DNA of 29,784 bases from Macrostomum lignano (GCA_002269645.1 NIVC01000588.1:1-29784), one strand, 5' to 3'; positions 3,264 through 29,784 are shown, numbered from the stretch's first letter. A program made the numbers and translations. The notes: a model not told the origin generated them from the sequence alone.

Positions 3264-6200
3264 ATGCAGCATTCACAGAAAAGGTGAGAATTAATTATTG
3301 GGATAACTGTAACAACTATTATAGTTTTTGCACAGTGAGATGAATCATAAATCTAAGTACACTCGTACTTATCAACCAAAATACACTGGTCTCACAATTT
3401 TATCCACTTTGATATTGGCATTGGCTCTTCCAGTGCATTTTTTACATTCAGAAACAGGCAAAAATGCCACCTCGTGCATATTGTACATAGTCAAAGAGAA
3501 CTTCTCATTCAAAATTTAACCCCCATGAGTTACACAACCTACGCCGCGAACTCAAAAGGTCAAAAACTCAAACTAAAATCACAATTAATAGCAACAGTCT
3601 ATTCAATTTAACTTCGCACAGGCATAACTTTATTTATCGTCAGGAATGTACACTTCACTGTGCCTTGGGGGTTGGCCCTCAAGCTAGGAGTTAATTGCAC
3701 GAGCAGAGCCAAGCTGAGATTCCAATTTAGCCCCAAATTAATGCATCTGCAATTGAAATCGAGCCCGGGCCGCTGGAACATTTACTTAGCAACATCGAAA
3801 AGTCGCCATCATAGAAGATTCCGTCTGTGGTCGCTACTTTTGACAGTGCAAGTAAAGTCTCTCAATCTTTGCGAGTGACGCAACTTAGCTACGCCAAGCG
3901 GCAGACTTGAGTTGAGGAGTTGAGGAATAAAGGGGGGAGCGGTGTACGAGGGCTGGGCGGATTAAAGCTACCCCGATCAATTTTCTTGTATCTTATATTT
4001 TACGAGCTAGAACTTGGTCCAAGAGAAATTGCTCACTGGCGCATAGAGTATCGACTTTTCAATGTGGCTGAGTATAAGAGCGCGCTAGACCAATAGGCTT
4101 CGCCCCCATGAAATGGTTTGAAAATACAAGCGTACAATAATAGCTTCTCTATGGTTTAGATCATTAGCTTTGCAAGACAACATTTGACGAAATACTCTGG
4201 AGAGAAATAGAATAGCAAAAATTCATTGCTTGTACGAGTTGTAGGAGTGAATTGTTATCAATAAACTAAGAAACTTTCAAAAATACTCGTACGCCTGTTT
4301 TTGTCATCCCACTACTAGCAACAATCACAATCCCAATCTCAACAGCAGGCTCCTGTTCGGCCTTCTCGCAGTCTTCCTCGCAACGCTGATTGTGCTGGTA
4401 ATTGTCTTCGCCGCGCTGTTCGCTCGGTGCAGCGGCAGCCATAGCGGTGGAGGCGGCGACAAGGGGACAGGTAAGATGCTCTTAGTCTGAGTTGTCAATC
4501 AATACAATCCTAGAGAGCATACCACCGGTACTTAAAAAACGTTGCTCTTGCATACGAACGTAGTTTCTGCTACTGACAATACTCCTATATCTTTCTGTCC
4601 ACCTATCTGTTAACCAACACGTGTAACGTGGATCACAGAAACACCCGAATGGCGAAGAAACTGCGTCTCCGACTCCGGCACTGACATCTATCAGTACAAT
4701 GCCGTCTCGTCAGACTCCGCAGTGTGCAGCACCATAGGAGATCACGTGCTCAATGTACTCGGCGGAAACGCCATGGACGCCGGAGTGGCCACGGTGCTGT
4801 GCGTCGGCGTCTCCAACTTCCACAGCGCAGGAATCGGCGGAGGCTCCTTTCTAGTTTACTACAACCGGTAGGCGCAGTTCTGTTTGTTTTACCATAATCA
4901 GTGACGGCCTATACTCGTAGAAAGTAAAGTCGTTTCCATTTCTTAATAAACACTATAGCATGAGCAGTTATGCAGTCTAGCAGTCTAACATGCATATAGA
5001 AGGTTAGGGTCTTGTTTTACTCCAGACGCAAAGGCGGCATCATAGTAGGGTATGTTATTTATAGGGCAGGTTACAAAGGGGGTTGTAGCCTAGTGGTTAG
5101 AGCGTCGGACTCACGACTTGAAGGTCTAGGGTTCGATTTTTGATCCCACTGGAACAATTTGTGTCCTTGAGCAAGACACTTAACTCTGCATTGCTTCAGT
5201 TCACCCAGCTGTAAAATGGGTGCCAGCATTAGCTGGGGTAATTGAGGGTGTGCGTGGCGACCCCCCAGTCCTTGAACTGAACAGCCGTACGCAGCCTTCA
5301 GATGCGCCGAGCAATAGCTGCGGCTGAGCTGTCGGTTGCACATCTGCACCAATTGAGGCAGGTGTAATGAAAAAAATCTGAATGTTGTTTATAAATCCAA
5401 AATGAAGTGTGTATTTAAACTGGTTATTAAAACATACTTCTACAAACCTGTCTCTTGCTGCATAAGACTAAGGGGTTATACAGCGGGTTTAAGAGGAACA
5501 ATAAAAAACAGACATGCCAAGCTCGCGTGCCAAACTTAAAACAGCACCTCCAAGACAGCCACCGCGTTTGACTTCCGCGAATCGGCGCCTGCCGCCGCGT
5601 ACCGCGACATGTACAACACCACCTCCGGCCTGCCGTCGAACGCTTCCCTCTACGGCGGTCTGGCGATCGGCGTGCCGGGCGAGGTCGCCGGTCTGGCAGC
5701 GGCTCACGCGGCGCACGGCCGCCTTCCGTGGCGCTCCGTGGTCGAGCCGGTCTCGCGAGTGCTTCGCGAGGGCCAGCGCGTGTCTCGCCCGCTGGCCGAT
5801 GCCATCGCGACAGTTTACCCGCGAGTGCCGGATGTGGCTCCATTTAAGGTGCTGAAGAACTGGATGGTCAATCCTAACACCAATAAACCGTACCGTGCCG
5901 GTGAGTTGCTGGTGGACCACGCAATGGCCAGTACAATGGACAAGATTGCAAGCGATCCGCAATCATTCTACAACGGGAGCCTCGCTGATGACATCCTGCA
6001 GGAGGTGCGGGCGGCTGGAGGCAACATTACCAAGGATGACCTTATGGTAAAAATTAAACATGAGCGTATTAAAAATTTAATTAACCTAATACATGGCAAT
6101 AGAGACCTCTGCAATACAGTACAAAAGAAAACGATGATAAGTTAATGATTTCCATCTTCAACCTAAACTGGTTTATTTTTTCCATTCTCTATCATTCCTA

Positions 6201-8707
6201 CATTATCACATATTTCAGAAGTACCAAACTAGGCGACTCACGCCGCTCACGGCGACCTTGCCGTCGAAGGGTCTGACGCTCTACTCGCTGCCTCCTCCGA
6301 GTAGCGGCGCCGTTCTTTCTCTCATTCTCGGCATCATGGACGGCTACGCCGGAGACTCTGCCCAAGCGAGGTCGACGCAGGATGGCTACGTCAACTTTCT
6401 CCACCGTCTCGTCGAGTCGTTCAAGTTCGCTTACGCGAAGCGCTCCGGTCTGGGCGACGCGGCATTCGTGGACGTGACCGAGCTGGTGGCCAACATGACG
6501 AGCAGCAGCTACGCGTCGGAGCTTCGCAGTCGCATCACCGACGACGCCACGCACGATATCAACTACTATGGACCAATGTTCGAGTGGAAAGAGGACTCTG
6601 GCACGACTCACGTGTCTCTTGTGGACTCTGACGGCAACGCAGTTGCTGTGACTTCAACCATTAATACATAGTAAGCGACGACTCAATTGCCGTTGACTCT
6701 ATAGGAACACTATTGGACAGCTTTTAAAATATTTTACAGAAGATTAGCCACGAACCTTGGTTCAATTGATTCACAAGCTAGTTTTTTCACGCTACAGAAC
6801 ATGTCTTGCTGTCACGCACATCTGGCATCCAACTTATTTGATTCAGCTCCTAGTAATAGAAAAATCAGGACCAAATAGAAAAAAGCGTCTTATTTCAAAG
6901 AGAAATCATACCGCTTGAAAAGTTTTGAAAGACATTTGTTACTATCTACAGTTTCGGCTCATTAGTTCGTGGCGAAAAGACCGGCATAGTCTACAACAAC
7001 GAGATGGACGACTTTTCACAGCCTAACAGGACCAATTATTACGGTCTGCCTCCGTCGCCCACCAACTTTATTGCGGCGAACAAGCGCCCGATGTCTTCAA
7101 TGGCGCCGGTGATCGTCGTTAGCGCCGATGGTGACGTCAAGTTTGTCAGCGGCGCTTCTGGCGGCTCGCGCATCACCACGGCTATCGCTTACACGCTGGC
7201 CAGACAGCTGTACCTGAATGAGACGGTCAAGGCGGCTGTGGACTCCTATCGACTGCATCACCAGCTGCTGCCGAATGTGCTCAACTACAATCCAGCCAAG
7301 TGCGATCCCCCTGAGGTAAGTCCGTGTTTGAGGACTCCGATTTTATGTTGGGGGGAGGCAAAGCCCAAGAACTAACAACTAACTAACGATACTTATTACG
7401 TGTAGCACAACCAAGTTCCCAAAGAGTTTTGGGGTGCCCCATGAACTAAATTTGGTGCTACTACTTGAAGTAATAAACACAACTTCGTAATCCATTATGA
7501 TGGAGAGACAGTCAGCTTTTTCAAGTTTTGGTTCACCAAAAATGTTACTGAAGAAATATCCCACAGTCTCGCGTTTTATTCGCCGATTCTGTCTTTCACA
7601 TGAATATATAATTATTTGTGCAACACAAAACATTTTAACAAACTGATATCTGTTTTAGTTTGATTTCTGGCGTAAAATTTATTCAAATAACAGAGATGGG
7701 GACAATTTTTTGTCCATCTAATTAAAACATAAGGCGAAGTCTTTCACATAAATGACGGATTGTTACGAGCTCGTAAGATTTCGTCAAATCTGGTAGAATC
7801 TCGTAAGATCTCGTAAGATCTCCTAGGATCTCGTAAGATTTAGTAAGATCCAGTAGGATCTCATAAGATGTCTTAGGATTTTGTAAGATCTCATAAGAGA
7901 TCTCGTAAGATCTATTCAGATCTCGTAAGATCTCATAAGATTTCGTAAGATCTCTTAGAATCTCGTAAAATATCATAGGATCGCGTCAGATCTCGTAAGG
8001 TCTCGTAATATCTCGTAATATCTCATAAGATCTCATAAGATCTCGAAAGGTCTCGTGGGATCCCGTAGTATCTCGTAGGATCTCTTATAGTATCTCGTAA
8101 GATCTCGTAGGATATCTTTTAGTATCTCGTAAGATCTCGTAGGATATCTTGTAGTATCTCGTAAGATCTCGTAGGATATCTTGTAGTATCTCGTAAGATC
8201 TCGTAGGATATCTTGTAGTATCTCGTAAGATCTCGTAGGATATCTTGTAGTATCTCGTAAGATCTCGTAGGATATCTGGTAGTATCTCGTAAGATCTCGT
8301 AGGATATCTTGTAGTATCTCGTAAGATCTCGTAGGATATCTTGTAGTATCTCGTAAGATCTCGTAGGATATCTTGTAGTATCTCGTAAAGTCTCGTCGGA
8401 TCTCGTAAACTTAGCTTAGGTTGTAAGTTAACTTTCAAAGGACTAATTTGCTCGCAAACCATGTTAAATTATTTCAACGTGCATGGTTTTACAAGAAACT
8501 GTAGATTTCGACGTGTTTCACTGAATTAAATCCTATCAAATGAATTGAATTTTGTTGCAGAGTATCAAGCAGCGGCTACGCCAAAAAGGTCACAAGGTGC
8601 AGCCGTTCAGTTCCACCAGCGTGGTCGAAGGGATTCAGCGACTGTCAAGCGGCCAGCTGCAAGCCAACGCTGACTTTCGCAAGCCGTCAAAGACCGGCGG
8701 TTTCTGA
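3264..8707 (+). CDS. ggt: Gamma-glutamyltranspeptidase / glutathione hydrolase paralog 1 (type II membrane, 621 aa)
   Basis: join(3264..3283,4319..4470,4639..4867,5545..6046,6219..6670,6952..7315,8561..8707) = 1866 nt, all GT-AG, phases consistent. N-terminal TM LLFGLLAVFLATLIVLVIVFAALF. Motifs GGNAMDAGVA, SAGIGGGSF, FRESAP, VPGEVAG, EDSG|TTHVS (catalytic Thr 6603-6605), TSTINTYFGS, NNEMDDFS, RPMSSMAP, SGGSRITTA, ADFRKP. The 20-nt first exon is inferred from phase fit. Confidence 0.93.
3625..3780 (-). mobile_element. 5'-truncated tRNA-derived SINE (family B) in GGT1 intron 1
   Basis: Aligns over about 155 nt to 9394-9548 (shared CCTTGGGGGTTGGC, GTTAATTGCACGAGCAGAGCCAAGC, GCCCCAAATTAATG). B-box variant GGCTCGATTTC on -; A box missing. 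Confidence 0.75.
5078..5376 (+). mobile_element. tRNA-derived CORE-SINE (MIR-like core) in GGT1 intron 3
   Basis: A box TAGCCTAGTGGTTAGAGC (5086-5103); B box GGTTCGATT (5130-5138); TGTGTCCTTGAGCAAGACACTTAAC...CTTCAGTT...CTGTAAAATGGG (5160-5220) matches the MIR/CORE consensus as I recall it (TGTGACCTTGGGCAAGTCACTTAAC...CTCAGTTT...CTGTAAAATGGG); ends in an A run at 5370-5376. Confidence 0.8.
7770..8408. repeat. Minisatellite in GGT1 intron 6: degenerate 10-mer (AGATCTCGTA) grading into a 32-bp higher-order unit
   Basis: 7770-8090 consists of imperfect decamers. About 8090-8390 holds 9 near-perfect copies of GTAGTATCTC-GTAAGATCTC-GTAGGATATCTT (32 bp). Confidence 0.95.
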
Positions 8708-9106
8708 TCCGATGGCATGATTTGCAATTTAGTTTCACCTTCTGCTTGGTAATCTTTAAAGACCGCGAAACAGACAACTTAAAGTGCATATGGTGCGTAT
8801 TTGTACGTGTATTTTCAATTTGACTTGAATACAATTTACATTTCTAGAAGGTCCATTCTGTCTGAATATTTATTGAAACAGAATACGCTTAACTACAATA
8901 ATATAAATCTCTAGTATATAGCATGCCAAACTCCAGAGAGTTTGCATCGAAAATTTCATAGTATATAGTACATACGTTCTAATTAATTATTTTATCTTGC
9001 ATCTAAGGTAAACAGGGGCAGGGTCGTCCTTGTTCACAACCCATGAGGACCAACCCCCCCCCCCCCCCCAAGGCACAGAGAGTGTACATCCTGATGACTA
9101 CACAGT

Positions 9107-9395: not shown

Positions 9396-9580
9396 ACTTT
9401 ATATTATCGTTAGGCATGTACATTTCACTGCGCCTTGGGGGTTGGCTTTCAAGACCGTTAATTGCACGAGCAGAGCCAAGCCAAGATTCCAATTCAGCCC
9501 CAAATTAATGTGACTGCACTTGGAATCGAGCCTGGGTCGCTGGTACACCAGAGCTTGCGCTAGACCGCTGAGCTACGCCC
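9394..9580 (-). mobile_element. tRNA-derived SINE (family B), apparently full length
   Basis: On -: GGCGTAGCTCAGCGGTCTAGCGC (A-box region, 9557-9579) and GGCTCGATTCC (B-box variant, 9522-9532). The body is shared with 3625-3780. Confidence 0.75.
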
Positions 9581-9806
9581 CCCCCCCCCCGATGTCGCCG
9601 AAGGTGTTGCGTCACAGCGTCAGGATGCCCTACAGTCCTCCTGCCCTACAGTCGCTGTATTCCAATGGCAAGGATCTGGTATCAGCCGAATCAAGGAAGC
9701 GGGTAATCCCAGTTCCTGTGTCTGGAGCAGATCCCGCATGTATGCCAATAGCTGCCGGGCAAGAAGGCGCGGTTGTTTTAACTGTTGAGTCAGCGACAAT
9801 GGTCAG

Positions 9807-11056
9807 TCAGTCAATACATGTACCGGCTGCCACTGTTTTGTTCAATTTCGAATTAAATAACGAGGCTGATGATCCAGACGAGACAAAAACGTTCTGCAGA
9901 ACATCAGAGGCCAGTCGAGCAACTTTAGCTGATGGCCCGATGTATCGCTCCATCGCAGATGAAGAATGACCGGTAAAACGAGCAATTTCTGGCCTTGAAA
10001 TTCCAGCATCCCGAAGCGTGGTGGCACAGGTCTTTCTAAGACTCTGATTCGTGTAGCGCCCTGAACTTGGTTCAGGTAGACCAACAAGCAGATTCCGAAC
10101 AACAGCTTCCAAACTGTGGACACCAAGCGATTGATTTTGGTACCACTTGCCGGAGCGAATAGTGTCTTCCTTGCGGATGCACGATAGAAATAGCTGCGGC
10201 TTAGAGCAGTCTGGCGGACGATAACCAACGTACTTCTTATACAGACACACTAGGCAACGAACGTGACCGGGAGTATGAAACACTGAATTTTGCTTGAGCG
10301 GCCTATTAAATGTCTTCAAACCACCAGGCCTTGTCTTTGAAACGGAACTCTCTTTGTACACGAGAACCTCGTCCGTTCCCTCGATAGATAGCTGCAGCTG
10401 CTTGTTGATTTCGAGTCTGTGTAACTCACTACCGCCTCGCAATCCAAAGACTTTACCGATCATGAATATTAGGGTGTTGAGTAGCACCTTCGGAGAATCA
10501 TCTCCTAATAGACCTCGCTCCCATAAGATATTCTCACTATCCGAAGCAATTGGTGCAGCTGCCCATCCACCATTTAATTGTCCTTCCCGGGCGGTCTCTC
10601 GCATGGCAGCATCTAGCGCACGTCGCGTTTCAGCGAACTCGGCATCAGTCCAGATGGAAAGAGTCCGTTTAAGTCCGTAAACAAAGTGGTGCTGGATCAT
10701 GGAGACTAGATCTTTGATGGTGCCAGGTGGAAACTTTTCTCCATTCTCTTTACGAACTTCGAACACAAAATACTGGAGCAAATGGTTCAGGTCGGATTTC
10801 GTTAGATCCTCGGTTGGCTTGAGAACCATAAGTCCCGACTCTTCGCCTGCCAATTGACGATTGACGCGCGTCTCTTTCCATAGATTAAATAACTTCATTG
10901 CCCATTTTTCCTTCGCTCGGGTAGCGGCAGGCAAACTTTCTTCGATTCTTTTTTTAGAGCAGCTTCGTCCAGGGACTCAGCAGAAACTCGAGTTGTCGAC
11001 TCTATTCCAACAGCAGCAAAAAAAGCGTCAAAATTGAGGTCTTCTAAGCCTTCCAT
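9807..11056 (-). CDS. Crypton-type tyrosine recombinase (DUF3504-like), about 416 aa if a 1-nt frameshift in an A7 run is corrected
   Basis: ORF 9807..10934 carries KWAMKLFNLW, LQYFVFEVRKENGEKFPPGT, FAETRRALDAAM, LLGDDSPKVLLNTL, FGLRGGSE, SKT, RCLVCLYKKY, WYQNQSLG, NQSLRKTCAT and TGHSSSAMERY, i.e. the R-K-(H>Q)-R-H-Y set of Crypton recombinases. An upstream ATG at 11056 (MEGLEDLNF...) joins in frame with one extra A at 10949-10955. Confidence 0.85.
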
Positions 11057-11266
11057 ATTGTATTTTTGATTCTATTTTGAAGAAGAAGCGACTCTGAATT
11101 TGGCTTTTACTTTTTGCCACCACTGATTGACTGGCTGCTTCGTGACTGCATCTTCGTGAGAAACGTATTTGATTTGTCTATGGTCGGAATCAAATGGCCT
11201 AAGCCTATAATGTCTATCAATCAGATGGGATGCCCCCGAAAAATAAGATATCGAAGTTCATATATG

Positions 11267-11411
11267 ATAAACGCCGCTTAATTCACCATAGTCTATGGTT
11301 AGAATATCCTCGGCTACAATCAATGGTCCTCGGCTCGCTTTGCTCGCCTCGGAACCATTAAATGCAGCCTCGGACATTCTAACCACAGAATGTGAATTAA
11401 ACGGCGTTTAT
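11267..11411. repeat. 145-bp imperfect palindrome with four CCTCGG hexamers
   Basis: ATAAACGCCGCTTAATTCAC...GGTTAGAATATCC pairs with GGACATTCTAACC...GTGAATTAAACGGCGTTTAT. CCTCGG at 11308, 11328, 11347 and 11368. Centre GGCTCGCTTTGCTCGCC. Confidence 0.9.
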
Positions 11412-11704
11412 TATTTACTTAACACACACAATAGCGAGATACAATGCGCTGATATATTCTTTCAGTAGCAAAACAAAGCGTTTTTTTCTATATTTGGAAA
11501 AGAAAGTTTTAATTTTACACGATATTTAAAGATTTTAGAGCCACAAAATTCGTTTGTGGCTTTCTACACGCAGACCCATTAAATTAGCATTTTTACCCTT
11601 TTGAAGCTGCAGCCAAGTCCATAGCGTGCATAGCGAACAAGAAAAATTGGTGGCGCCAGGGACTGCTTAAACTAGGGACGGGAAAGTGGCCAAATCATGC
11701 AGAA

Positions 11705-11876
11705 AATAGTTGGAGGCTGGTTTTTTAGTGCTCCCTAGAACTTATTACTAAACGCAGAAAGCTGTTTGTTCGCCATCCTGAACAGAATTTATCCCTCTAC
11801 AAGATGCACAACTCGATGTTTGTCAAGCTTCATTCTGAGAGGAGCAGTGAGCCTTTTTGTACAGGACCCCCTTTTT
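11705..11876 (-). repeat. Repeat family X copy
   Basis: 11775-11870 is the reverse complement of 13549-13644 with about 8 mismatches in 96 nt; weaker similarity extends left to about 11709. Confidence 0.8.
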
Positions 11877-12531
11877 TTCTAGGGAGTTAAACATAGCCAA
11901 CGCCTTATTGAGATGTCTAGGTCTTTTGCACAAGCATCATCGCTATTCAGTTAAGCTTGTAGTCAATTCTGCTGCTGCCTCGTGTTATTTGGTCCGACCG
12001 GGCGTAGCTTGGTTGGGTGTTAAACCAGTGGGGCGTGGCTCTTGTGCGTTGGTGCGGGGGGTGGTGGGCCGGGCCTTGGTCACGTGCCCGCGGCCTGGGT
12101 GGCGTTTATTTAATACGGTGCGGGCTGTCGCTGACCCGCCAAGCGCGTATTGATTTTTTTTTCTCGCTTTTAAGTCTCCAAGGTTTTTATTTGGCTTTTA
12201 AGTCCGGTAAATTAAAGTTAATAAATACGCTCGAATACTCGTACAATAGGGCCAGGCTCGAACCTGCGCCTCTCGTGCCAACTGCCTTTACTTCGTCTCA
12301 CTGGTTTAAGTGATGCATTTTATACCATAGACAACAAGCCGTCTGACTGCAGATTTTTATAAGACATTCTCTATGGTAGTGTGAGCATCTTTTGTGTAGT
12401 TTGCATTTTATTAGTTAGTTTCCATATTTTTAATTATTATTTTGCTTATTTGGTCACGCGTTTTAATGTACTTTTTTCTCTTAGTTTAGAGTTTGTTTTG
12501 CGTAAACAGGTTAGAAGTTAGACGCCAATTC

Positions 12532-13510
12532 TGTGACTCAGCGAAGGGTTGAGTTTTCCTGCGTACCCCAAGCTTTGCGCGGCCAGCCAATCAAGATCGG
12601 CCTGGACCCTGGCACGCGGCAAAATCCAAGTCTACCCGGCGCCTCGGGTCCAGTACAAGTCGGCTTAGCGAGCGGCCGGCCAGACACCCACCACCCGGCG
12701 TGAGGGGGGTTTGAGGGGTTTGAAAGTGACTATAAATGAATGTGTGTTTTGGCGGTCGGCTCTCATCTTCGGTTTTTCGGCCTTTAGCTTGTCCAATTTC
12801 CCGGCCGTTTTGCCCTCTGTTTTCGCGCTTTGAGGCGCTTGTTCTACTCGTCTCCCCCGGTCCGTGTTTTATTTCCCTCGCCCAACCGCACCAGTCTTGT
12901 GACGTAACGCCCACGATAACCTTGTCTGAGGGCGTCGTTATCAAGCGCGGTTTAGATAGACTTGACAAAGTATTGACAAAGTACGTGGCCTCGACCCGAG
13001 GGCCTCAGTGTCGCACTGAAGGGCAGCGCTGGTAGAACTTAGCCAGAGCTCCGCTGAACTGTCAATTCGTCAGGGCTCTCGTTTGAGTGTAGGTTCTGGA
13101 TTTAGGCCAGTGTTTAGGAGTCTTTCTCCGTGGTCCCGTGTTCGGTTCCTTTTTCTTCTTTAAAGCTGAGATCCGCTCGCCAGTTGCGTAATTAATTTAT
13201 TATCGTTGTTATCCGTGCTCAAACTTATCTGCGTCGCGAACTGCGTTGAGAACTTGTAATCAATTTTAAGTAACTAAAGTAAATCGTCTAAGTCAATTAT
13301 TAGCTATTCTTGAACTAGGATTATCACTCTCTAAATCTGCTTGAATCGTTTCACCCTTGTTTCTTCTTTACTTGTACCGTACCTGCAACTATCGGAGAAA
13401 GATTGGTAGAACTCGCCGACCGGTGATAGGCAATAGGGCTAATAGTTTAAAATCTCTGAACGCTTTAAAAGTAGGTTTGTCTAGGGCCTAATTTATTTGC
13501 CGTATCGCAT
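12532..13510 (+). other. Unclassified GC-rich, promoter-like segment (possible solo LTR)
   Basis: Starts TGTGAC; CCAAT at 12587-12591; TATAAA at 12731-12736 followed by a pyrimidine-rich tract and an AT-rich 3' part. A TG...CA segment 12532-13064 is flanked by ATTC on both sides, which is weak evidence. No coding domain recognised. Confidence 0.25.
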
Positions 13511-13542
13511 ACTGTATTTATCACACTATATAAAACACTGTG

Positions 13543-13910
13543 AAAGAGGGGGTCCTGTACAAAAAAGCTCACTGCTCCTCTCAGAATTAAGATTGACAAA
13601 AATAGAGTTGCGCATCTTGTAGAGAGATAAATTCTGTACAGGATGTCGGAAAAACAACGGAGGCGCACTGCTGATTGGCGCACATGGGTGTACTCAATGC
13701 ACCAGCGCTTACGGAAAAAACCGACCTCCAGAAGAATCGTCGAATATCTCGACGGTCCGGAGGGCTGGCGACTGGATTCTTGTTTGAGAAGGTGCGCAGC
13801 AAAAGTAAGTCCGTGTTCTTGAATTTCGTGTGCCTACGTTGCTCCGTTCCGGCGCAGCAAAAATTGTCAGGGGTCCCCCCTTGGTAGTTCGATGGGCGAA
13901 CAATGGCTTG
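13543..13910 (+). repeat. Repeat family X, longest copy
   Basis: Contains all segments seen in the 2.4-2.9 kb, 11.7-11.9 kb and 15.6-15.9 kb copies. Confidence 0.8.
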
Positions 13911-15624
13911 GTATTCCTACTTTCAAGTTGTAGAAAAAATGCTTCATACATACTCTTTATTCAAGGTCTCAAAGGCGCCAGAAAATTCTGTCGCATGGAC
14001 TTTTCCGGAGGAGCGGTGAGAAAGAAAAAATGTACGGAAAGGTGTAGAAATTATGCGAAAAGGGGGCACGCTATGACCCCCGTCGCGGTGTCACTCCAAA
14101 GTATCCTTGGCTGTGTGTTAACTTTCATAATATAATTATACACACGTGATCTCAGTCGGCAGGTTGCATGCAAACAGCTCATACCCACGGTAAGCTTCTC
14201 TGTCCGACACAGTCCGTCTCTCCCCATCTCTTTCTCTCTCCATTTCTTACCCACGTACCATTATTTATTTTCTTAAAAAAGATGAACTCGCTTTGCACTC
14301 ATTTTCCCCAGTAGCTTCGTTAGACTAAGAGGTCGAGCTTCGCATTCTGAGCACAACTGTATCCTTAAACTAACCGATCGAAGACAAATGCATCCTTCGC
14401 AGATTAGGTAAGAGATAAAAATGCATTTCTATAAGTGTGATAAGTGTGACGAATGCGTCGTCAAAAGGTGTTGTTAGTAGTATCCAAAACTTCTGTCCAC
14501 CACAAGCCGGCAGTTTGGAAGTTTTGCCTCGTTGAGGACGCAAGGAAACAAGCTGCAAAATGGATGCAGAGATGCTAGATTTTTTTGCAATATGAGCAAA
14601 AATTGATTTATCTGTAAATATTCTGGTTCATCGTTCCATATACTCGTACAATATACTCCATATGCTCGTTAGTTAATTTAAACGCTTAAGCCATAGAAAT
14701 CTCGGATGGGCCGTTCCGGTTTTGTGTGCCCAACTGATCGACATAGCACGACGAAAGTAGTACGCTCGTAGCTACTCGAACTCGTACAAGCCTGGAACTC
14801 GACGTGACTCAACTAATAATTCTGCGAAGCAGACCTCAGATTCCGTCTCCATTCTTGCCCTCAAATCCATAGGCAGAGCTGGTGTTGTCTTAGCATTTCG
14901 ACAACGCCACTAAGCATTAACCATAGACGCGACGAAACTAGCGGGCGCAGGTTTTGCGTTCTTGTATCACATTCTCATTTTACTCTGCCTGTTGTTTTGA
15001 TGTTTTTCCATAGACATCAGCAATCCTGCACGATTGAGGGTGCGGAACTGTCATATGTATCATTCTTACATGCAGAGTCAAACAAGAATGGATTCCTGCC
15101 CGCGTTCAAAAACCGCGGGCACAACTGACGATTCCATGGGCTCTGCGGCCGTGAGCCAAGTATAGTTATAGTGGCTGTTCTACTGAACATGAAAGTGAAA
15201 TGACCAGTTCGGAAAGGTTTTAATTACGATGACAATTGACAAAATGAACTCATATGCTTAAAGCATCAGTTCGCATAAACCAAATAGACAAAATTTTCGA
15301 GCTGTCAGCCCTAAACCATTGAGCTTGGCCTCAGACATCAGCCAAAAGCTGCTAAAGAAGAACCTAGCTTGCATTTGAAGCTGAGGTATCTTTGCCTTGC
15401 AGCATTTTGTAATTAATTGAATACAGAAAATCTCTGTGCGCAAGTTCACAAGGGACAGACTCACAGCTCAGACTCTTGCTCCGGCAGTATTTTCTGTGAA
15501 TTGCTTTTTATTTTGATGCAGACATAAATGCAAATTATTTTTTGCTCATCTAGTTAAAGTCTGGCCACTCACTGTGTATGTTCTTCTACTGCGTGGAGAT
15601 TGAAGTTTTTTAGCTGTAGGTTTG

Positions 15625-15889
15625 CAAAACCATTTCGCAACCCCCGTTTTCACCCCCCACCTCCCCACCTTACTGGCATTGTGCTGCGCCAGAAAGAGCA
15701 GCAGACACACGAAATCGAAGAGCAAGGCTAACTTTTTTGCTGCGCACCTTCTCAAACAGGAGTCGAGTGCTACGCTTCTAGAACATCGAGCTATTATTGT
15801 TATTAAAAGATTCTGGGCATGCTGCATTTTGTACCCCCCCTATGCGCCAATTAACACAGCGCCTCAGAATGTCCTTGACAAGCCTGACA
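15625..15889 (-). repeat. Repeat family X copy, ending at the Tc1 TIR
   Basis: CACACGAAATCGAAGAGC...TTTTTGCTGCGCACCTTCTCAAACAGGAGTC and TGCGCCAATTAACACAGCGCCTC align to the reverse complement of 13640-13910. Confidence 0.7.
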
Positions 15890-15891
15890 TA

Positions 15892-16989: not shown

Positions 16990-17285
16990 TATGATGTGAG
17001 CCCAATCATCCAGAGCGACGCCTACAGCTGAACCCTGTTGGGAAGCTACGACCCCGAGGTCCCCAGTCAGAGCTCCCGTCCAGTGTCCCAGGGAGAAGCA
17101 GGAAAACAACAGAGCAGAACTCACGAGCTTCCGCGCAAAAGCCGATACAGTTCGCACTTGCTATGTGCTATGGTAGACAAGTAAGTTTGTTTTGAAGTAG
17201 CCAACGATAGGACCAACAGAACGCAAGGGCGCGGCTGCCTAGTAGACAGCAAATTCATTATATTTATTATCTGACCTACGAGTAC

Positions 17286-20200
17286 ATGAATACTTTTAGA
17301 ACAAATGTACGGTACGGTAGGGGGAGGTGGTGCGAGGTGGCGTGATCGGCGTACGCGTTGATTATTGATTGGAGGGGTGAGGCAGACTGGAAGGGTTGGG
17401 GCGGGGCAGGAGGGCAAAAAAGAACACGATTGCACAACAAATATTTCATCAGCACGTCGACCACTGGTATTTGCTATGCTGCTGACTTTCTTTTGCTGCT
17501 CAATTCCAGCGCAGTTAAAAAGTTGTATGGGGAATCCCCATGGTGGATCTACTGCCAATAATGATGCTAAATTTACTGTTATTGTCACTTCTACTCACTG
17601 TTAAACACGCAAACCACTTTGATTTTATTTAAACAGCAAGTACGTGTTCGCTCTTCTGGCAGCCGTCATCACTGCACTGACTGTACTGGTCATCGTTTTT
17701 GTCTCACTATACCTGCGCTGCATTAACGATGAAGCAACCAACAAGACAGGTGAGACCCTCCGTAGCACAAAGTTTAAACATCAGATGAAGTCGCTCGGAG
17801 CATGTTGGAGCATGCATGGTGGAGCACATTGATATGCAAAACCTTTCCAGAGACATCCGAGTGGCAGAACAACTGCGTTTCTGACTCGACAAAAGACATC
17901 TATCAGTACAATGCGATCTCAGCTGACTCGGCAGTGTGCAGCACAATTGGAGATTATGTGCTCAACATCCTCGGAGGCAACGCTATGGACGCAGGAGTCG
18001 CTACTTTGCTGTGCGTTGGCGTCTCCAACTTTCAAAGTGCAGGCATCGGCGGAGGATCATTCTTAGTTTACTACAATCGGTAGGTTTAAACTTTAAGGGG
18101 CTTACTCAGGCTTGACAAATGACTCAAAAATGAGTCTAAACACTCCAACAGATCCTCGCGAACGGCAAGCGCCTACAATTATCGAGAAACGGCGCCTGCC
18201 GCCGCGCATCGCGACATGTACAGCAGCGCTTCCGGCCTGCCGTCGAACGCCTCCCTCTACGGCGGTCTGGCGATCGGTGTGCCGGGCGAGGTCGCCGGTC
18301 TGGCAGCGGCTCACGCGGCGCACGGCCGCCTTCCGTGGCGCTCCGTGGTCGAGCCGGTCTCGCGAGTGCTTCGCAAGGGCCAGCGCGTGTCCCGCCCGCT
18401 GGCCGATGCCATCGCCTCAAAATATCCGCAAGTGCCGGATGTGGCTCCGTTCAAGGAGCTGAAAGACTGGATGGTCAATCCGGCTACAGGAAAGCCGTAC
18501 AAGGAGGGTGATGTGCTTGTTGACACTAAACTGGCCGACACCATGGACAAGATTGCAAACGATCCGCAGGTATTTTACAATGGGAGCTTAGCCGATGACA
18601 TTGTTCAGGAAGTGCTTTCGGCCGGAGGCAACATTACCAACGATGATCTTCTGGTATGCTTAAAAGATATATGATATTTTTATTTAAACAGGCTTTTAGC
18701 AGACTAATTGATTTTTAAGTCGCGCTCATTCCTTCAGAATTAGGACTGGTTTCCATCAATGCAAATACGCTCGTAGACTTGCAACTTCTAAATGACATTA
18801 TCGAATATTCACTTGACTTATTCTTCACACTATTATTTGGCTTTTGGGTCTTCTTAAGCAAAAATAACTTAAACAGCAGCATTTGAAAGTACCTAATGTC
18901 TTCTTTTTCAGTACAATTCTCTTGTAAACTTGCACTAATTCGAGCTAAATCACCCTGCTTGACATCGGGAATTATAGAACTACCGACCGAGGCGCCTCGA
19001 CCCGCTGATGGCGACTCTGCCGTCGAAGGGTCTGACGCTCTACTCGCTGCCTCCTCCGAGTAGCGGAGCCGTTCTTTCTCTCATTCTCGGCATCATGGAC
19101 GGCTACGCTGGAGATTCAGCAAACGCGAGGTCGACGAAAGACGGCTACGTCAACTTTCTCCACCGTCTCGTCGAGTCGTTCAAGTTCGCTTACGCGAAGC
19201 GCTCCGGTCTGGGCGACGCGGTATTCGTGAACGTGACCGAGCTGGTGGCCAACATGACGAGCAGCAGCTACGCGTCGGAGCTGCGCAGTCGCATCACCGA
19301 CGATGCCACGCACGATGTCAACTACTATGGACCAATGTTCGAGTGGAAAGAGGACTCTGGCACGACTCACGTGTCTCTTGTGGACTCTGACGGCAACGCA
19401 ATTTCTGTGACCGCCACCATCAACACGTAGTGAGTTGATATTGATAGCATTAGACGTAAAGTTTCCATTGTTTTTCTGAGGTCTTTAAGCTATAATACTG
19501 TGTAGTATGCTGTTCTTAAGCGGGCAGAATCTGCGCCATCAAAATTCAAAAACTGTTCAGCTTCTAAAATTCTTCCACCAATGCAGCTTCGGCTCAATGG
19601 TCCGCGGCGCCCGCACTGGCATTTTCTACAACAACGAGATGGACGACTTCTCCCAGCCCAACAAGACTAATTTTTTTGGCCTACCAGCCTCTCCCACGAA
19701 TTTTATCGAGCCCGGCAAGCGTCCGATGTCTTCAATGGCCCCGACTATTCTCGTTGACTCCAGCGGTGCCGTTCAGTTTGTCAGCGGCGCTGCTGGCGGC
19801 TCCCGCATCACCACGGCTATCGCCTATATGCTGGCTAGACAGCTGTACCTGAATGAGACGGTCAAGGCGGCTGTGGACTCCTACCGACTGCATCACCAGC
19901 TGGTGCCGAATTTTGTCACCTACAACCCCGATAAATGCGACGTACCAGAGGCAAGTTTCCTAATATTATTATATCGACGCTTTCTGCAACAGTTTTTCTC
20001 TTGATATCTGACATGACGACACTGGCTCGTTACCTCAACATATGCGCCTCACAGCCTTCAATTTCATAATTTAATTGCAAGATATACGTTAGGATATTAG
20101 TCGATTAAGCTTGATAATATAAAGATGATGCGGTTATTACATAGCGTTGCACAGCGTTTAGCAGCTCTTGATTTTGTCTTAAAAAATAACTTTTTTGGAA

Positions 20201-21144
20201 CGGGTTTTATTGTTGGGTGTTAGTCAACTCACTCAATTTTAAGGGCCAAAATGTGATTCCGCTTTCATCGAAAGGGTGTACATCGAGAAAACAGTGGCAC
20301 CTTTGAGTGCTCTTGAGTGCTGACCCTACTACTATATCAAGGACTACTGTAGTATAACAAGACGTAAAACTTAATGGTCGTGTAATTTTTAGGAGGCAAA
20401 TTTGCTGGAAAAAATACACAATGTTGTGTTCTGAAAGTTTTATTTTCATATTTTCTTTTTTCATAAGGCCAAGTTTTAAATGAGCACAAGTGAAATTTTT
20501 GTTTTGTTGCTTCTTGAGTGCAGTTTATTTGTAATAAAGTTTTTGCACGAAGGTACTCATTTTTAGACCCTTAAGCTAGGCCTTGGCTAAAAAATTGATA
20601 GCTTTCGAAAGACTAGGTCAGCAGCAATATGGAAAATGGTATTGGTAAACAGTTAATTATTTAGGCAGGTCTAGGAATCCATATACTACATCTAAAATGT
20701 AGCTACTAATTTACATTTAAATGGAGCTATAACTACACTAATGGCTTAAGAGTACCCATGCATGCAGCCATTTTTATTACAAAATTTCTTTGATTCAAAA
20801 AGCAACAAAACAAATGTTCCATTTGCGAGTATTTATAACTTTGGCTTGGGCTGAAAATTTTTTTCCTATCTCAGAAGTGCATTTTTCAAGGAGATTGGCC
20901 TCCTTATATGATTACACGTCTTTGCGTTTTGCGTCCTGTTATGCTACAGTGGTCCTTGAACTAAATACAGCTTTTCCACGTCGAAATGACTCTTCAGATC
21001 ATCAAATCGGAGCTGCGTCGCAAAGGCCACGCAGTTCAGCCCTCCAGTTCGCTCAGCGTGATCGAGGCGGTCCAGCGACTGCCGAACGGGAAGCTGCAGG
21101 CGAATTGGGACTTTCGAAAGCCGTCAAAGACGGGCGGCTTTTAG
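17286..21144 (+). CDS. ggt: Gamma-glutamyltranspeptidase paralog 2 (about 610 aa; first exon tentative)
   Basis: join(17286..17311?,17637..17749,17851..18079,18152..18653,18978..19429,19587..19950,20998..21144). Exons 3-7 are 229/502/452/364/147 nt, identical to paralog 1. TM VFALLAAVITALTVLVIVFVSLYL. All catalytic motifs present. Intron 6 donor is GC (GAG|gcaagt, 19951). The first exon was chosen only by phase fit with a weak donor. Confidence 0.9.
20338..20958. mobile_element. MITE with 33-bp TIRs, possibly P-superfamily, in GGT2 intron 6
   Basis: Left CAAGGACTACTGTAGTATAACAAGACGTAAAAC (20338-20370) vs reverse complement of 20926-20958 CAAGGACCACTGTAGCATAACAGGACGCAAAAC: 4 mismatches. Flanking 8-mers TACTATAT / AACTAAAT match 6 of 8. 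CAAGG fits the CANRG terminus of P elements. Confidence 0.6.
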
Positions 21145-21934
21145 CCGCACCTGCCTGCTGGCTGCTGTTGACAACTATACACTTCGTAAATATCGGCCGT
21201 TCTGATTCTCACTGGCTAGAGGCGTGCTGACTTTCCAAGAAAGATCTATTTTAAGTAACATAAATTTGAAAAGTTTTCATTTTCACAATAATAGCTTTAA
21301 TTATCAAGAATGTCAGCACTGAAGGCATCTTTCCAGTTTACTTTATATGAGTTGGATCTCAGTTCAACAAATTTCAATCCGTAAACTTTATACTCGAAAT
21401 TTCTTTCTTTTTAGAAACTTAAATTACCAGCGTACAGATAAATTAATTCAACTTCTTTTTCGAATAAATGTTTTTTTCAGAAAAAATGTGCCCACTACTC
21501 ATAATAGTTAGTATAATGTAGTAATCTAGGATCAGACTTTTTATCGTGTTACCTTAAAAAATCTTGGAATTCAAAATATAACTGAACTGAATCTTGCAGA
21601 ATATTTTTTACTACGGCACGAACTGTCGCTATAGGTTTTAGACAGGTTTTCAAAATGACTACAGACTTGTTTACATGTATAGTTGCGATTCACTAATCAC
21701 AAAGATAGTTAAGTTATGTTTCAAAGACATTACTTATTAGTCCGCCTATGTACTCAGGTAAAAACCTAGAAAGCAGGGATTGGGGCTGTAGCCTCCTATC
21801 AGTATCAGTGCTCTCTTATCGGCACTGGGCGGCTCGAATAAGCAGATAAAAATAGTCAGACTGCATGGCCATCCGCATGCAAGGCCGAATTGAATGTTTT
21901 GAGCAACTGCAGGCTCCACAAACACGCAAGAGAA

Positions 21935-26653
<4,719 letters not shown>

Positions 26654-26675
26654 TTCCATACAGTTGACCAATGAC

Positions 26676-27000
26676 GAGGGTATATCAACTGTTTGGCGTC
26701 TTTAAATGCCAAACTTTCAGTTGATAAGTCGTCGAGGCCCACTTAAGGACTACTAGACTACTGTCGTGACTTTTTAGTCATCTGACTTATCTCTTAAGTT
26801 CATCTATCGGATACGATTGTCTCTTTGTTTACTAGTTCTGTCTGTCTGGTTCATCTGATTTATCTTATCTCTCTCTCTCTCTCTTGATCGCTTCTTATTG
26901 GCTCTTCATTCATCTGAGAGAGTGGTTTTACGCAGTAAGGCGGGTTGGTGCGCCACTGAGGAAAGAGCTAGCTAAGATCGAAGAGCCAATCAGAAGCGAG

Positions 27001-27037
<37 letters not shown>

Positions 27038-27232
27038 AGATGAATCACATGAGCCAGACACAGAGAAATAGTAAACATAGACGAGCGCAGATGAACTGAA
27101 GAGAATAGTCACATGATTAAAAAGGCGCGAAAGTGGTCTAGTAGTCCTTGAATGGCCCTAGTCGTTTCCCCTAGTCGTTTCCTTCAACTGATGTTTCGTA
27201 TTCAAAGACGCCAAACAAGTTTGATCCATCTT
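26676..27232. mobile_element. Foldback/MITE-like element with about 230-bp imperfect inverted arms containing (TC)n/(GA)n
   Basis: Left TGTTTGGCGTCTTT...AAGGACTACTAGAC...GTTCATCT...TCTCTCTC...GCTTCTTATTGGCTCTTC pairs with right GAAGAGCCAATCAGAAGC...GAGAGA...AGATGAAC...GTCTAGTAGTCCTT...AAAGACGCCAAACA. The central spacer is about 70 nt. Confidence 0.8.
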
Positions 27233-27538
27233 GTTCTGTTGCAGCAAAGTTTCAAATCAAAAATTGTTCTCGTTTGATTAGATCGATTGATTGACAGATT
27301 AAATATAAATTGACTAGATTGTTTGGACGCTTGATTAGATATTTACATCTTTATTGTGCAGGCATAGAAGGCAATTTATCTAATATAGAAAGTTTGAATT
27401 ATGACCAGGCAAACAGTTTTTATAGGAAAAATTTCAGATTCTATGATCATATATTTACGTTTTAATAATGCTTTGTTATATTTGGCAATCAAACCGCTAG
27501 GCAGCACGATTTACCAGCTACTTGAACATATCAATCTA

Positions 27539-27608
27539 AATAAAAAGCATTGAAACTGCTGTTTTTAGGCCAGGTAGGGCATAGTGAATGCAAATTCATT
27601 CATTTATT
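27539..27608. terminator. Convergent candidate poly(A) signals of GGT3 (+) and GGT4 (-)
   Basis: AATAAA on + at 27539-27544 and AATAAA on - at 27603-27608, between the two stop codons (26653 and 27856). Use is not demonstrated. Confidence 0.3.
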
Positions 27609-27855
27609 CTTTCTTATTCGTTAATTTCGGTGCCTACTGTTTCTGTTGACTTGTTGACACAGCATTAAATGAGTTTCAGCTTACTATCTACTCATGAGTA
27701 GTATGGATAAAATATAATATTAATTAAGTAATCCGCATAGCTAGCCACGCTGGAGTAAGTTTATCATACAATAATGTATCAGAGCAGCCTTTTTAATAGA
27801 ACTTTAATCGTAGGAACATCACTAAGTAAACCCTCGTCAAGCATTCGTTCATCGA

Positions 27856-29784
27856 TCAGACACCGCCAGTCCTAGACGGCTTGTGATAGTCCGCATTCGC
27901 TTGAAGCTGCCCGTTCGACAGTCGCTCAATCGCCTGAACGGCGCACTGATCCGTCTGAATGGTTTCAGTTTGTGGCCTTTGCGACGAAGCTCCTCCTTGA
28001 TGATCTGGAGAGGGCAGTAAGGAGAGTGAGCAAACGTCTATCGGGAGTGCACGAAGACAATGTAGCTAAATTCTGACCGAATGGTCTACCGGAAACGGCT
28101 CACGATCTTCCTGTCAAACTTAGGGTGTTGAATTATGACGGCTTATACGAGCGTATCATGATATAAGATTGCCTCGAACACTACCAGACTGCCACAGTTG
28201 ATTAGCTGTCAGCAACCACAATCTTTTAGTACATACAATTTCAGTTGCTATTCAAAAGACAAGGGCTTGCCTCAGGTGGGTCACAAGCATCCGGATTGTA
28301 GTTGAGCACATTCGGCACCAGCTGGTGATGCAGTCGGTAGGAGTCCACAGCCGCCTTGACCGTCTCATTCAGGTACAGCTGTCTGGCCAGCGTGTAAGCG
28401 ACAGCCGTGGTGATGCGCGAGCCGCCAGCAGCGCCGCTGACAAACTGGACGTCACCATCGGCGTTAACGACGATCACTGGCGCCATTGAAGACATCGGGC
28501 GCTTGTTCGCCGCAATAAAGTTGGTGGGCGAGGCTGGTAGGCCAAAGTAATTTGTCTTGTTGGGCTGAGAGAAGTCGTCCATCTCGTTGTTATAAAAAAT
28601 TCCAGTGCGGACGCCTCGAATCAAAGAGCCAAAGCTGCAATGTGGGTTTTATGTTCAGAGTTTCCATCCGAAACGAGACGTCGAATTCTTATAGAATGCT
28701 TATAGTCAACAGCAAAGAAATTTCCTGGTAGGATTAGCAATCAACTCACTACGTATTGATTGTGGAGGTGATAGAAATTGCGTTGCCGTCAGAGTCCACA
28801 AGAGACACGTGAGTCGTGCCAGAGTCCTCCTTCCACTCGAACATTGGTCCATAGTAGTTGACATCGTGCGTGGTATCGTCGGTGATGCGACTGCGAAGCT
28901 CCGACGCGTAGCTGCTGCTCGTCATGTTGGCCACCAGCTCGGTCACGTTCACGAAGGCCGCGTCGCCCAGACCGGAGCGCTTCGCGTAAGCGAACTTGAA
29001 CGACTCGACGAGACGGTGGAGAAAGTTGACGTAGCCGTCTTTCGTCGACCTCGCCTTTGCTGAATCTCCAGCGTAGCCGTCCATGATGCCGAGAATGAGA
29101 GAAAGAACGGCTCCGCTACTCGGAGGAGGCAGCGAGTAGAGCGTCAGGCCCTTCGACGACAGAGTCGCTGTTAGTGGCGTGAGACGCCTTGGTCGGTAGT
29201 TCTGAGATATATTGTAATTTACTTCGAAATAGTTGAAAGGTTGAGAAAATTTATAACATAGATCTCGTGTATTCGATTTTTGTACTTAAAGGTAAAAGGT
29301 TTTCACCATCGTCTCACAGTAGAAAAAAGTTGCAAGGCATTGATGCGACTTACTAATAGGTCATTTTTTGTAATGTTCCCTCCCGGCCGCGCAAGCACTT
29401 CCTGAACGATGTCATCGGCTAAGCTCCCATTGTAGAATACCTGCGGATCGTTTGCAATCTTGTCCATGGTGTCGGCCAGTTTAGTGTCAACAAGCACATC
29501 ACCCTCCTTATACGGCTTTCCTGTAGCCGGATTGACCATCAGTCTTTCAGCTCCTTGAACGGAGCCACATCCGGCACTTGCGGATATTTTGAGGCGAACG
29601 CTTTCGCTAGCGGGGCGGGACACGCGCTGGCCCTCGCGAAGCACTCGCGAGACCGCTCGACCACGGAGCGCCACGGAAGGCGGCCGTGCGCCGCGTGAGC
29701 CGCTGCCAGACCGGCGACCTCGCCGGGCACACCGATCGCCAGACCGCCGCTAGAGGGAAGGCGTTCGACGGCAGGCGCTGTACA
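27856..29784 (-). CDS. ggt: Gamma-glutamyltranspeptidase paralog 4 (5' partial; frameshifts in exons 4 and 7, either pseudogene or sequence error)
   Basis: complement(join(27856..28004,28271..28634,28750..29201,29354..29784)). Exons 5 and 6 are intact (452 and 364 nt) with EDSG|TTHVS, TSTINTYFGS, NNEMDDFS and RPMSSMAP. Intron 6 donor is GC (GAG|gcaagc). Exon 7 is 149 nt rather than 147. Exon 4 has several 1-2 nt indels relative to paralog 2. Confidence 0.8.

Follow-up and report, generated by a model that had tools for sequence, protein, structure and literature searches.

What keeps exon interiors alike among genes whose introns can no longer be aligned, and why does the most similar pair of genes change from one exon to the next? 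This question is raised by a 29,784-nucleotide (nt) contig of the flatworm Macrostomum lignano (NIVC01000588.1:1-29784, assembly Mlig_3_7, GCA_002269645.1), which was analysed over its whole length and is called the window below. It holds four seven-exon genes of the gamma-glutamyltransferase (gamma-glutamyltranspeptidase) family (GGT; Pfam PF01019, MEROPS T03, Ntn hydrolase). A sequence-only reading of the window had proposed recurrent ectopic gene conversion among these old paralogs, including an inverted copy. Topology switches along the genes, a drop in synonymous divergence within tracts, and an outgroup control all support that proposal, and we consider it highly probable that the four paralogs exchange sequence at the DNA level through interlocus (ectopic) gene conversion that is recurrent, non-reciprocal, and limited to short tracts.

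Gene models and mosaic similarity of the GGT paralogs

Gene models were rebuilt from the annotated window proteins P0003 (paralog 1) and P0001 (paralog 2), plus homology. Two further copies of the cluster, L and M, are present in the assembly beside the window copy W, and genes are labelled by copy and paralog number (M4, for example, is paralog 4 of copy M). Exons 1 and 2 of paralog 3 were located via annotated protein P0131 of the third subgenome copy (copy M). A tblastn search using the transmembrane (TM) exons of paralogs 1, 2, and 4 gave no match to the TM exon of paralog 3, which is unrelated in sequence to those of the other paralogs. Paralog 4 is inverted, and the contig end at 29784 cuts it within exon 4. 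The models and the two further copies are:

3264-8707, plus strand: GGT paralog 1, complete, 612 amino acids (aa); spliced model equals P0003 exactly, GT-AG introns; Pfam PF01019 E = 1e-159
3264-3283, 4346-4470, 4639-4867, 5545-6046, 6219-6670, 6952-7315, 8561-8707, plus strand: exons 1-7 of paralog 1
14388-21144, plus strand: GGT paralog 2, complete, 608 aa; spliced model equals P0001 exactly; PF01019
14388-14407, 17637-17749, 17851-18079, 18152-18653, 18978-19429, 19587-19950 (GC donor), 20998-21144, plus strand: exons 1-7 of paralog 2
21935-26653, plus strand: GGT paralog 3, predicted 621 aa; open frame, canonical splice sites, predicted start codon
21935-21960, 22393-22538 (poly-Val TM exon), 22739-22976, 24113-24605, 25079-25530, 25789-26152, 26507-26653, plus strand: exons 1-7 of paralog 3
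27856-29784, minus strand: GGT paralog 4, partial; homology to the complete copy L4 (P0002) on L002
27856-28004 (exon 7), 28271-28634 (exon 6), 28750-29201 (exon 5), 29354-29784 (3' 431 nt of exon 4), minus strand: exons of paralog 4
NIVC01000330.1 (L002, L004): copy L, colinear with window 11173-29784 at 97.4-99% identity
NIVC01003402.1 and NIVC01001773.1 (L003, L006): copy M

Exons 3 to 7 measure 229, 502 or 493, 452, 364, and 147 nt in all four genes. All four proteins match PF01019 over its full length (531-541 bits, cut-off 27; paralogs 3 and 4 were represented by full-length copies from other subgenomes), and they align end to end with the E. coli and human GGT structures. Relative to L4, paralog 4 has seven indels in exon 4 (window 29388-29777), mostly in homopolymers and near the contig end, and a GT insertion in exon 7 (27945-27946). 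Intron 6 of paralogs 2 and 4 begins with a GC-AG donor (GAG/gcaag; window 19951, plus strand, and 28270, minus strand), where paralogs 1 and 3 have GT.

As shown by the pairwise counts, the closest partner of a given paralog depends on the exon. Exon 3 pairs paralog 1 with paralog 3 at 18 of 229 differences, exactly the count given in the sequence-only reading, while other pairs differ at 34-53 positions and paralog 2 differs from the others at 42-53. The 3' part of exon 4 (SKYPQ..FYNG, 168 nt) pairs 2 with 4, with 5 differences compared to 42-69 for other pairs. In the middle of exon 6 (72 nt), paralogs 1 and 4 differ at two positions, as do 2 and 3, and every cross pair differs at 21. The stretch RQLYLNETVKAAVDSYRLHHQL (RQLYL..HHQL, 66 nt) is near-identical in all four genes (0-1 differences per pair). 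These pairings had all been noted from the sequence and hold upon recounting, as does the participation of the inverted gene, since paralog 4 shares tracts with both paralog 2 and paralog 1. The exon 5 core (MDGYAGDS..SDGNA) required a correction: paralogs 2, 3, and 4 are indeed close, but paralog 1, described as similarly close, lies at two to three times the distance. Over 306 nt the differences are 6 (2-3), 8 (3-4), and 11 (2-4), with 10-15 for paralog 1 against the others; over 308 nt and with the window's own paralog 4 they are 8 (2-3), 6 (2-4), and 4 (3-4), with 15-16 for paralog 1. The abrupt divergence reported ahead of the exon 5 donor was recovered (4-12 differences in the last 27 nt). 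An additional tract, absent from the earlier account, spans nt 42-221 of exon 4 and is common to paralogs 1, 2, and 4. The tracts are listed below with synonymous divergence (dS), the proportion of synonymous differences (pS), and the GC content of third codon positions (GC3).

4639-4867, plus strand: tract A, paralog 1 side, exon 3, pairs with paralog 3; 18/229 versus 34-53 differences, dS 0.26 versus 0.6-1.15
22748-22976, plus strand: tract A, paralog 3 side, exon 3; same difference counts and dS
5586-5765, plus strand: tract C, paralog 1, exon 4 nt 42-221; paralogs 1, 2, and 4 near-identical, 3 close; dS 0.07-0.09 among 1, 2, and 4; GC3 0.80-0.86
18193-18372 (paralog 2), 24154-24324 (paralog 3), 29638-29784 (paralog 4, minus strand): tract C homologues
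18373-18612, plus strand: tract D, paralog 2 side, exon 4 nt 222-461, pairs with paralog 4; 73-site identical run; dS 0.12 versus 0.7-1.8
29398-29637, minus strand: tract D, paralog 4 side
6268-6597, plus strand: tract F, paralog 1, exon 5 core, homogenised in all four; dS 0.10-0.19 for all pairs; pS 0.62-0.64 to the outgroup
19027-19356, plus strand: tract F, paralog 2
25128-25457, plus strand: tract F, paralog 3
28823-29152, minus strand: tract F, paralog 4; holds a copy-specific block at exon 5 columns 138-147
7059-7148, plus strand: tract H, paralog 1, mid exon 6, pairs with paralog 4 (28438-28527, minus strand); 2-3 versus 21-24 differences; paralogs 1 and 4 against 2 and 3 in 1000/1000 bootstraps
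19694-19783, plus strand: tract H, paralog 2, mid exon 6, pairs with paralog 3 (25896-25985)
7149-7238, plus strand: tract I, paralog 1, exon 6 nt 198-287 including RQLYL..HHQL, all four homogenised; pS 0.10 within the cluster versus 0.53-0.59 to the outgroup
19784-19873, 25986-26075, 28348-28437 (minus strand): tract I homologues

The arrangement of these tracts departs strongly from chance. Among 98 quartet-informative sites, 44 group paralog 1 with 4 and 2 with 3 (14/23), 37 support 13/24, and 17 support 12/34. Along the genes the sites fall into 42 runs, compared to 62.4 +/- 4.6 after permutation (p < 1e-5; 0/100,000 permutations gave a number as low). Using our own implementations of a GENECONV-like permutation test and of the pairwise homoplasy index (PHI) test, we found two globally significant tracts, one of 73 consecutive polymorphic sites identical in paralogs 2 and 4 (p <= 1e-4) and another in exon 6 between 2 and 3 (p = 0.03), and a PHI p value of 0.0005. 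Per-segment trees were incongruent, with adjacent segments backing different topologies at 94-100% bootstrap: 13/24 was obtained for the 3' part of exon 4 (97%) and for the end of exon 5 with the start of exon 6 (100%), and 14/23 for the exon 5 core (99.7%), mid exon 6 (100%), and the end of exon 6 with exon 7 (94%). Nei-Gojobori dS fell about 10-fold, from 0.5-1.8 in flanks to 0.05-0.2 in tracts. Congruent per-exon trees with uniformly high dS, the pattern named beforehand as speaking for purifying selection alone, were thus not what the genes show.

The introns had been described as unalignable, and this description is accurate. High-scoring segment pairs between paralogs end 2-23 nt beyond every exon boundary, except that paralogs 2 and 4 still match weakly over ~30 nt where intron 5 begins. 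Intron lengths vary widely between paralogs (677, 72, 1136, and 180 nt for intron 3). Divergence is also graded within exons: the mean pairwise third-position difference is 0.55 at less than 20 nt from an intron, 0.37 at 20-40 nt, and ~0.2 deeper (rho = -0.25, p = 6e-9). The unalignable introns and the high divergence at exon edges fit short tracts arising at the DNA level within exon homology blocks. Segments homogenised in all four genes have a GC3 of 0.79 versus 0.64 in divergent segments (p = 0.002), a contrast compatible with GC-biased conversion; raised GC3 has served as supporting evidence for conversion before (PMC2720389). We used this per-segment contrast and dropped the per-site correlation between GC3 and divergence (rho = -0.53) as partly circular.

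A simple series of events could produce these features. A break in one paralog would be repaired from the sequence of another, which may lie in direct or inverted orientation, and judging by apparent tract lengths each event would copy ~70-350 bp. With introns diverged past alignment, each exon would be an isolated homology block within which tracts begin and end. Exon interiors would stay homogenised, with donor-acceptor pairs differing by exon and hence switching partners, while divergence would build up where conversion fails, at exon edges and in exons 1, 2, and 7, which are short. Purifying selection at non-synonymous sites would keep the interiors similar enough for further conversion, and synonymous sites would ride along. 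Conversion of this kind looks GC-biased, and no special selection would be needed for the divergent islands.

Three cluster copies and alternative sources of the mosaic

M. lignano is a neopolyploid with subgenomes S, L1, and L2 that differ by 1.4-2.4% (PMC10733133), which fits the presence of three cluster copies. All three copies carry an identical old mosaic, which proteins of the earlier ML2 assembly also show for paralogs 1, 2, and 4. Because it recurs in three separately assembled copies, chimeric assembly of the window is unlikely; we place the old tracts before the split of the three subgenomes. Exon 5, in which the paralogs resemble one another most, has diverged most between copies, by 1.90%, compared to 0.57% in other exons and ~1.3% in introns. 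The intron baseline leaves out intron 6 of paralog 1 (112/1235 differences between copies), since those differences probably stem from minisatellite misalignment. At 60 of the 109 sites that vary within a paralog, both alleles also occur in other paralogs (8.9 expected, p = 3e-36).

Several of these variants form blocks specific to one copy. M4 carries a paralog-1-type block at exon 5 columns 54-147, where W4 has a 2/3-type block, and M1 carries a 2/3/4-type block at columns 132-170. The two exon 5 blocks of copy M overlap in position (L006 9725-10176, paralog 1; L003 16555-17006, paralog 4), as if two genes in inverted orientation had swapped sequence, although two independent conversions would do equally well. 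Orthology is scrambled over the exon 5 core, with mean distances of 9.0 within and 12.6 between paralogs: W1 is nearest to M4, and M2 is nearest to M3. M1 matches M4 at every position of mid exon 6 but differs from W1 there at 3. Exon 7, used as a control, groups strictly by paralog (0-1 differences within, 39-56 between). The copy-specific tracts and the scrambled exon 5 orthology suggest that exon 5 and mid exon 6 kept converting after the subgenome split, and conversion seems to be ongoing.

One paralog is damaged in each cluster copy, paralog 4 in the window. In copy L, exon 3 of paralog 3 has a 13-nt deletion (L002 ~10053) that lies outside a homopolymer and is probably real, and copy M has a 1-nt deletion in a G run in exon 4 of paralog 1 (L006 ~9185). 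Such damage is due either to redundant copies starting to decay after the genome was duplicated or to long-read errors that escaped correction. Window positions 11989-13525, in the spacer upstream of paralog 2, and 20550-20758, in intron 6 of paralog 2, are absent from copy L (L002).

Among other sources of the mosaic, unequal crossing-over or duplications that join parts of genes (chimeric gene birth) fare best, although we regard them as unlikely to be its main source. The genes do form a tandem or inverted cluster, and paralogs 2 and 4 are alike over a block spanning intron 5 and share the GC donor of intron 6. However, the introns between two homogenised cores are unalignable (introns 4 and 5 for the pair 2-3, for example), which indicates that each tract is separate and short. 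Joining events also sit poorly with several partner switches per gene, and with a gene number and order that are the same in three subgenomes while the tracts differ.

Mixing of paralogs during consensus calling or by Pilon with multi-mapping reads, which would yield spurious homogenisation of exons and spurious shared variants, is much less probable. Three facts speak for it: the assembly was polished by Pilon with genomic Illumina and RNA-seq short reads (PMC5730564), 36% of its length is in scaffolds chimeric between subgenomes (PMC10733133), and near its end the window contig has homopolymer indels like those left by long-read errors. Some of the recent shared variation in exon 5 can still be explained in this way. 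Yet short reads cannot be placed over tracts D and H, where the alternative state is 20-30% divergent, and the old mosaic is identical in the three contig sets and repeated in the differently processed ML2. Majority-rule mis-polishing would spread the commonest state, yet the block in M4 is of the minority, paralog 1 type. In addition, two ML2 proteins of paralog 1, P0122 and P0123, differ from each other at a diagnostic exon 5 site (SAQARSTQ vs SAKARSTK).

Constraint without any exchange, whether purifying selection or synonymous constraint from codon usage, splicing enhancers, RNA structure or antisense open reading frames (ORFs), can hardly account for the data. In its favour, the homogenised cores encode conserved parts of the enzyme, are GC3-rich, and are overlapped by long antisense ORFs. 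Constraint cannot, however, switch the closest pair between adjacent segments. As a silent-site control we modelled a more distant M. lignano GGT, Mlig025064 (P0005, locus L005), as the outgroup. Silent sites of the exon 5 core are saturated against this gene (pS 0.62-0.64, as elsewhere) compared to 0.10 within the cluster, and amino-acid identity to it in the cores is 0.68-0.70, barely higher than in the rest. A uniformly low synonymous divergence of the tracts to the outgroup GGT was looked for and not found. The topology switches and the saturation of silent sites in the same tracts therefore exclude constraint alone. As the control shows no silent-site constraint, the antisense ORFs over exons 4-5 were not taken as genes and were set aside as a by-product of GC-rich codons. 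The outgroup gene (L005 3001-7964) matches the cluster genes in the size of exon 3 (229 nt) and of the last exon (147 nt). It differs in that a single fused exon of 942 nt takes the place of the two that intron 4 separates and in that its exon 6 equivalent is interrupted by an additional intron, indicating that introns have been lost or gained within the GGT family.

Conversion from a spliced mRNA or cDNA template would explain why homogenisation is confined to exons, but we reject it as very improbable given the edge gradient, because a spliced template would homogenise sequence over exon-exon junctions and the 20-40 nt that flank the junctions are the most divergent at third positions.

Some observations weigh against recurrent interlocus conversion or narrow its reach. 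At third codon positions alone, only the 2-4 tract is globally significant in the strict-run test and the PHI p value rises to 0.036; the quartet-runs, PHI, and bootstrap analyses are more informative than strict runs here because older tracts are broken by later substitutions. True sister ancestry, and not conversion, may explain why paralogs 2 and 4 are alike where exon 5 ends, at the borders of intron 5, and where exon 6 begins, and why they share the GC donor of intron 6. Short reads could mis-map among the 12 near-identical exon 5 cores, making or erasing some shared polymorphisms, and the mosaic was read from assembled sequence. Concerted evolution was judged among the subgenomes of one species. 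When a draft of paralog 2 served as protein query, no close Macrostomum homologue came back from outside M. lignano, the next matches having 46-48% identity.

Divergent islands, enzyme motifs and membrane anchor

The sequence-only reading had singled out the TM exon, the TSTIN strand, the lid loop, and the C-terminus as parts that stay specific to each paralog. These islands exist, but a special status for them is less certain, as all lie at exon edges or in short exons. The divergent islands consist of junction-straddling segments (E, G, and J, with dS of 0.4-1.7) and the short exons 1, 2, and 7. The TSTIN strand falls within the last 27 nt of exon 5, and the lid-loop stretch forms the start of exon 6, inside a divergent segment. 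By alignment to E. coli GGT this stretch reads QPNRTNYYGLPPS, QPNKTNFFGLPAS, QPNKTSNSTLPPA, and QPNKTNYFGLPAS in paralogs 1 to 4, in that order; its position was assigned from E. coli residue numbering. In the islands dN/dS, the ratio of non-synonymous to synonymous divergence, is roughly 0.04-0.4, with no sign of positive selection. Selection might keep the islands apart, but they coincide with the edges of exons and with short exons, places at which conversion that relies on homology should fail in any case.

A more far-reaching proposal joins two elements: that conversion is still running after the recent whole-genome duplication, the copies recording single events (the M4 and M1 exon 5 blocks and the identity of M1 and M4 in mid exon 6), and that selection for different substrate access or localisation, and not just an exon-edge effect, maintains the differences in the lid loop, TM exon, and C-terminus. 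We put this combination forward tentatively and think it rather doubtful as a whole. If conversion is indeed still running, the cluster would be a natural system for studying its rate, tract length, minimum homology, and GC bias in a neopolyploid flatworm.

All four proteins contain SGT-THVSLVD, in which 'ttH' aligns with 'atH' of the E. coli GGT chain (2e0w); we take the second Thr to be the catalytic and autoprocessing nucleophile. Roles of the other motif residues were likewise assumed from the human and E. coli GGT structures. Paralogs 1, 2, and 4 have the gamma-glutamyl binding motifs NNEMDDF, PMSSM, and GxxGGSRI. In paralog 3 (exon 6, 25789-26152), PMSSM and GxxGGSRI are kept and NNEMDDF is replaced by NNVMDDF, a change of Glu to Val at a residue that presumably binds the substrate amino group. 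The paralog 3 lid-loop stretch, KTSNSTLPPA, is without an aromatic residue, and the other three paralogs have one. Activity of the paralog 3 enzyme may be altered or lost, as far as its predicted protein can tell.

Membrane-bound animal GGTs carry an N-terminal signal-anchor helix. A hydrophobic stretch of ~22 residues, read from the sequence, is encoded in exon 2 of paralogs 1, 2, 3, and 4. In paralog 3 the putative membrane-anchor helix is a poly-Val/Ala run from a GTT/GCT trinucleotide repeat (window 22393-22538). This run varies among the three subgenome copies: AVAVVLVLVVVVVVVVAVAFVL (window), AVAVVVVVVVAVVVVAVAFVL (L002 ~9494-9721), and AVAVVVVVVVVAVVVVAVAFVL (L003 ~10462-10692).

Related systems, practical consequences and neighbouring elements

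Mosaic concerted evolution by interlocus gene conversion is a well-described process, and the mechanism is not new. What is notable here, without being new in kind, is the set of four partners that switch pairs, the inverted copy, the confinement to exon interiors with an edge gradient, and the record kept in three subgenomes. A literature search by locus tag found no publication under the tags of these genes. Ruminant stomach lysozyme, as worked on by Irwin and Wilson and by Wen and Irwin, reportedly has coding exons that evolve in concert via conversion while introns and flanks diverge. That is the same exon/intron contrast as in the GGT cluster, in another gene family and taxon.

In mammals, mosaic concerted evolution by interlocus conversion was described for BMP8A/B, DDX19A/B, and TUBG1/2 (PMC2720389). 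These pairs resemble the GGT cluster in their segmental homogenisation, incongruent trees, GENECONV-type tracts, and raised GC3; however, their tracts also cover introns and involve two genes, whereas the GGT tracts involve four genes with changing partners and only exon interiors. How often conversion occurs depends both on sequence identity and on how long the homologous stretch is (PMC3924818). For HMA4 of Arabidopsis halleri, divergence-dependent conversion together with purifying selection was proposed to give homogenised exons and diverging introns (bioRxiv 10.1101/2025.10.29.685298, where Teshima and Innan 2004 is cited for divergence-dependent conversion). The HMA4 model and the GGT cluster share exons that are alike even at synonymous sites, long introns that have diverged, and a conversion rate that varies along the gene and so yields a mosaic. 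The HMA4 copies are young and very similar, whereas the GGT paralogs are old (flank dS 0.5-1.8), one is inverted, and subgenome copies stand in for population samples. In Caenorhabditis paralogs, conversion is reported to lower divergence between paralogs and to raise variation within them (PMC3966223). This resembles the GGT exon 5, with 1.90% between copies vs 0.57% in other exons, although the samples there come from diploid populations and ours are three subgenomes of a neopolyploid.

The cluster offers a clean example of a prediction of the divergence-dependent model, namely that conversion between old paralogs is confined to exon interiors, and its three subgenome copies provide a built-in time scale that makes conversion unusually easy to see. 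Trees of these GGT genes depend on the exon chosen. Given the scrambled orthology of exon 5, the homogenised cores cannot be relied on for short-read mapping, expression quantification, targeting by RNA interference or CRISPR, or subgenome assignment; paralogs can be told apart safely at exons 2 and 7 and at exon edges.

Several other elements were noted in the window. Intron 3 of paralog 3 (23059-24077) holds a 1-kb (TTAG) microsatellite of ~255 units, and the minisatellite in intron 6 of paralog 1 (7771-8407) has 32/64-nt units and gives spurious minus-strand repeat-peptide ORFs. The 3.2-kb intron 1 of paralog 2 contains remnants of a Tc1/mariner-type DDE_3 transposase on both strands (16168-17157). 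Between paralogs 1 and 2 lies an intact 375-aa ORF (9807-10934, minus strand) with matches to DUF3504 and QRICH1 and a faint tyrosine-recombinase (phage-integrase) match; we take it to resemble a Crypton-derived or domesticated recombinase-like gene. A Cys/Trp-rich repeat gene occupies window positions 1-1818 with its 3' portion; its fibronectin-type-I-like match is below threshold (22.8 bits vs cut-off 27), and its counterpart in copy L is a gene of 887 aa lying upstream of paralog 1 (L004 5575-8238).

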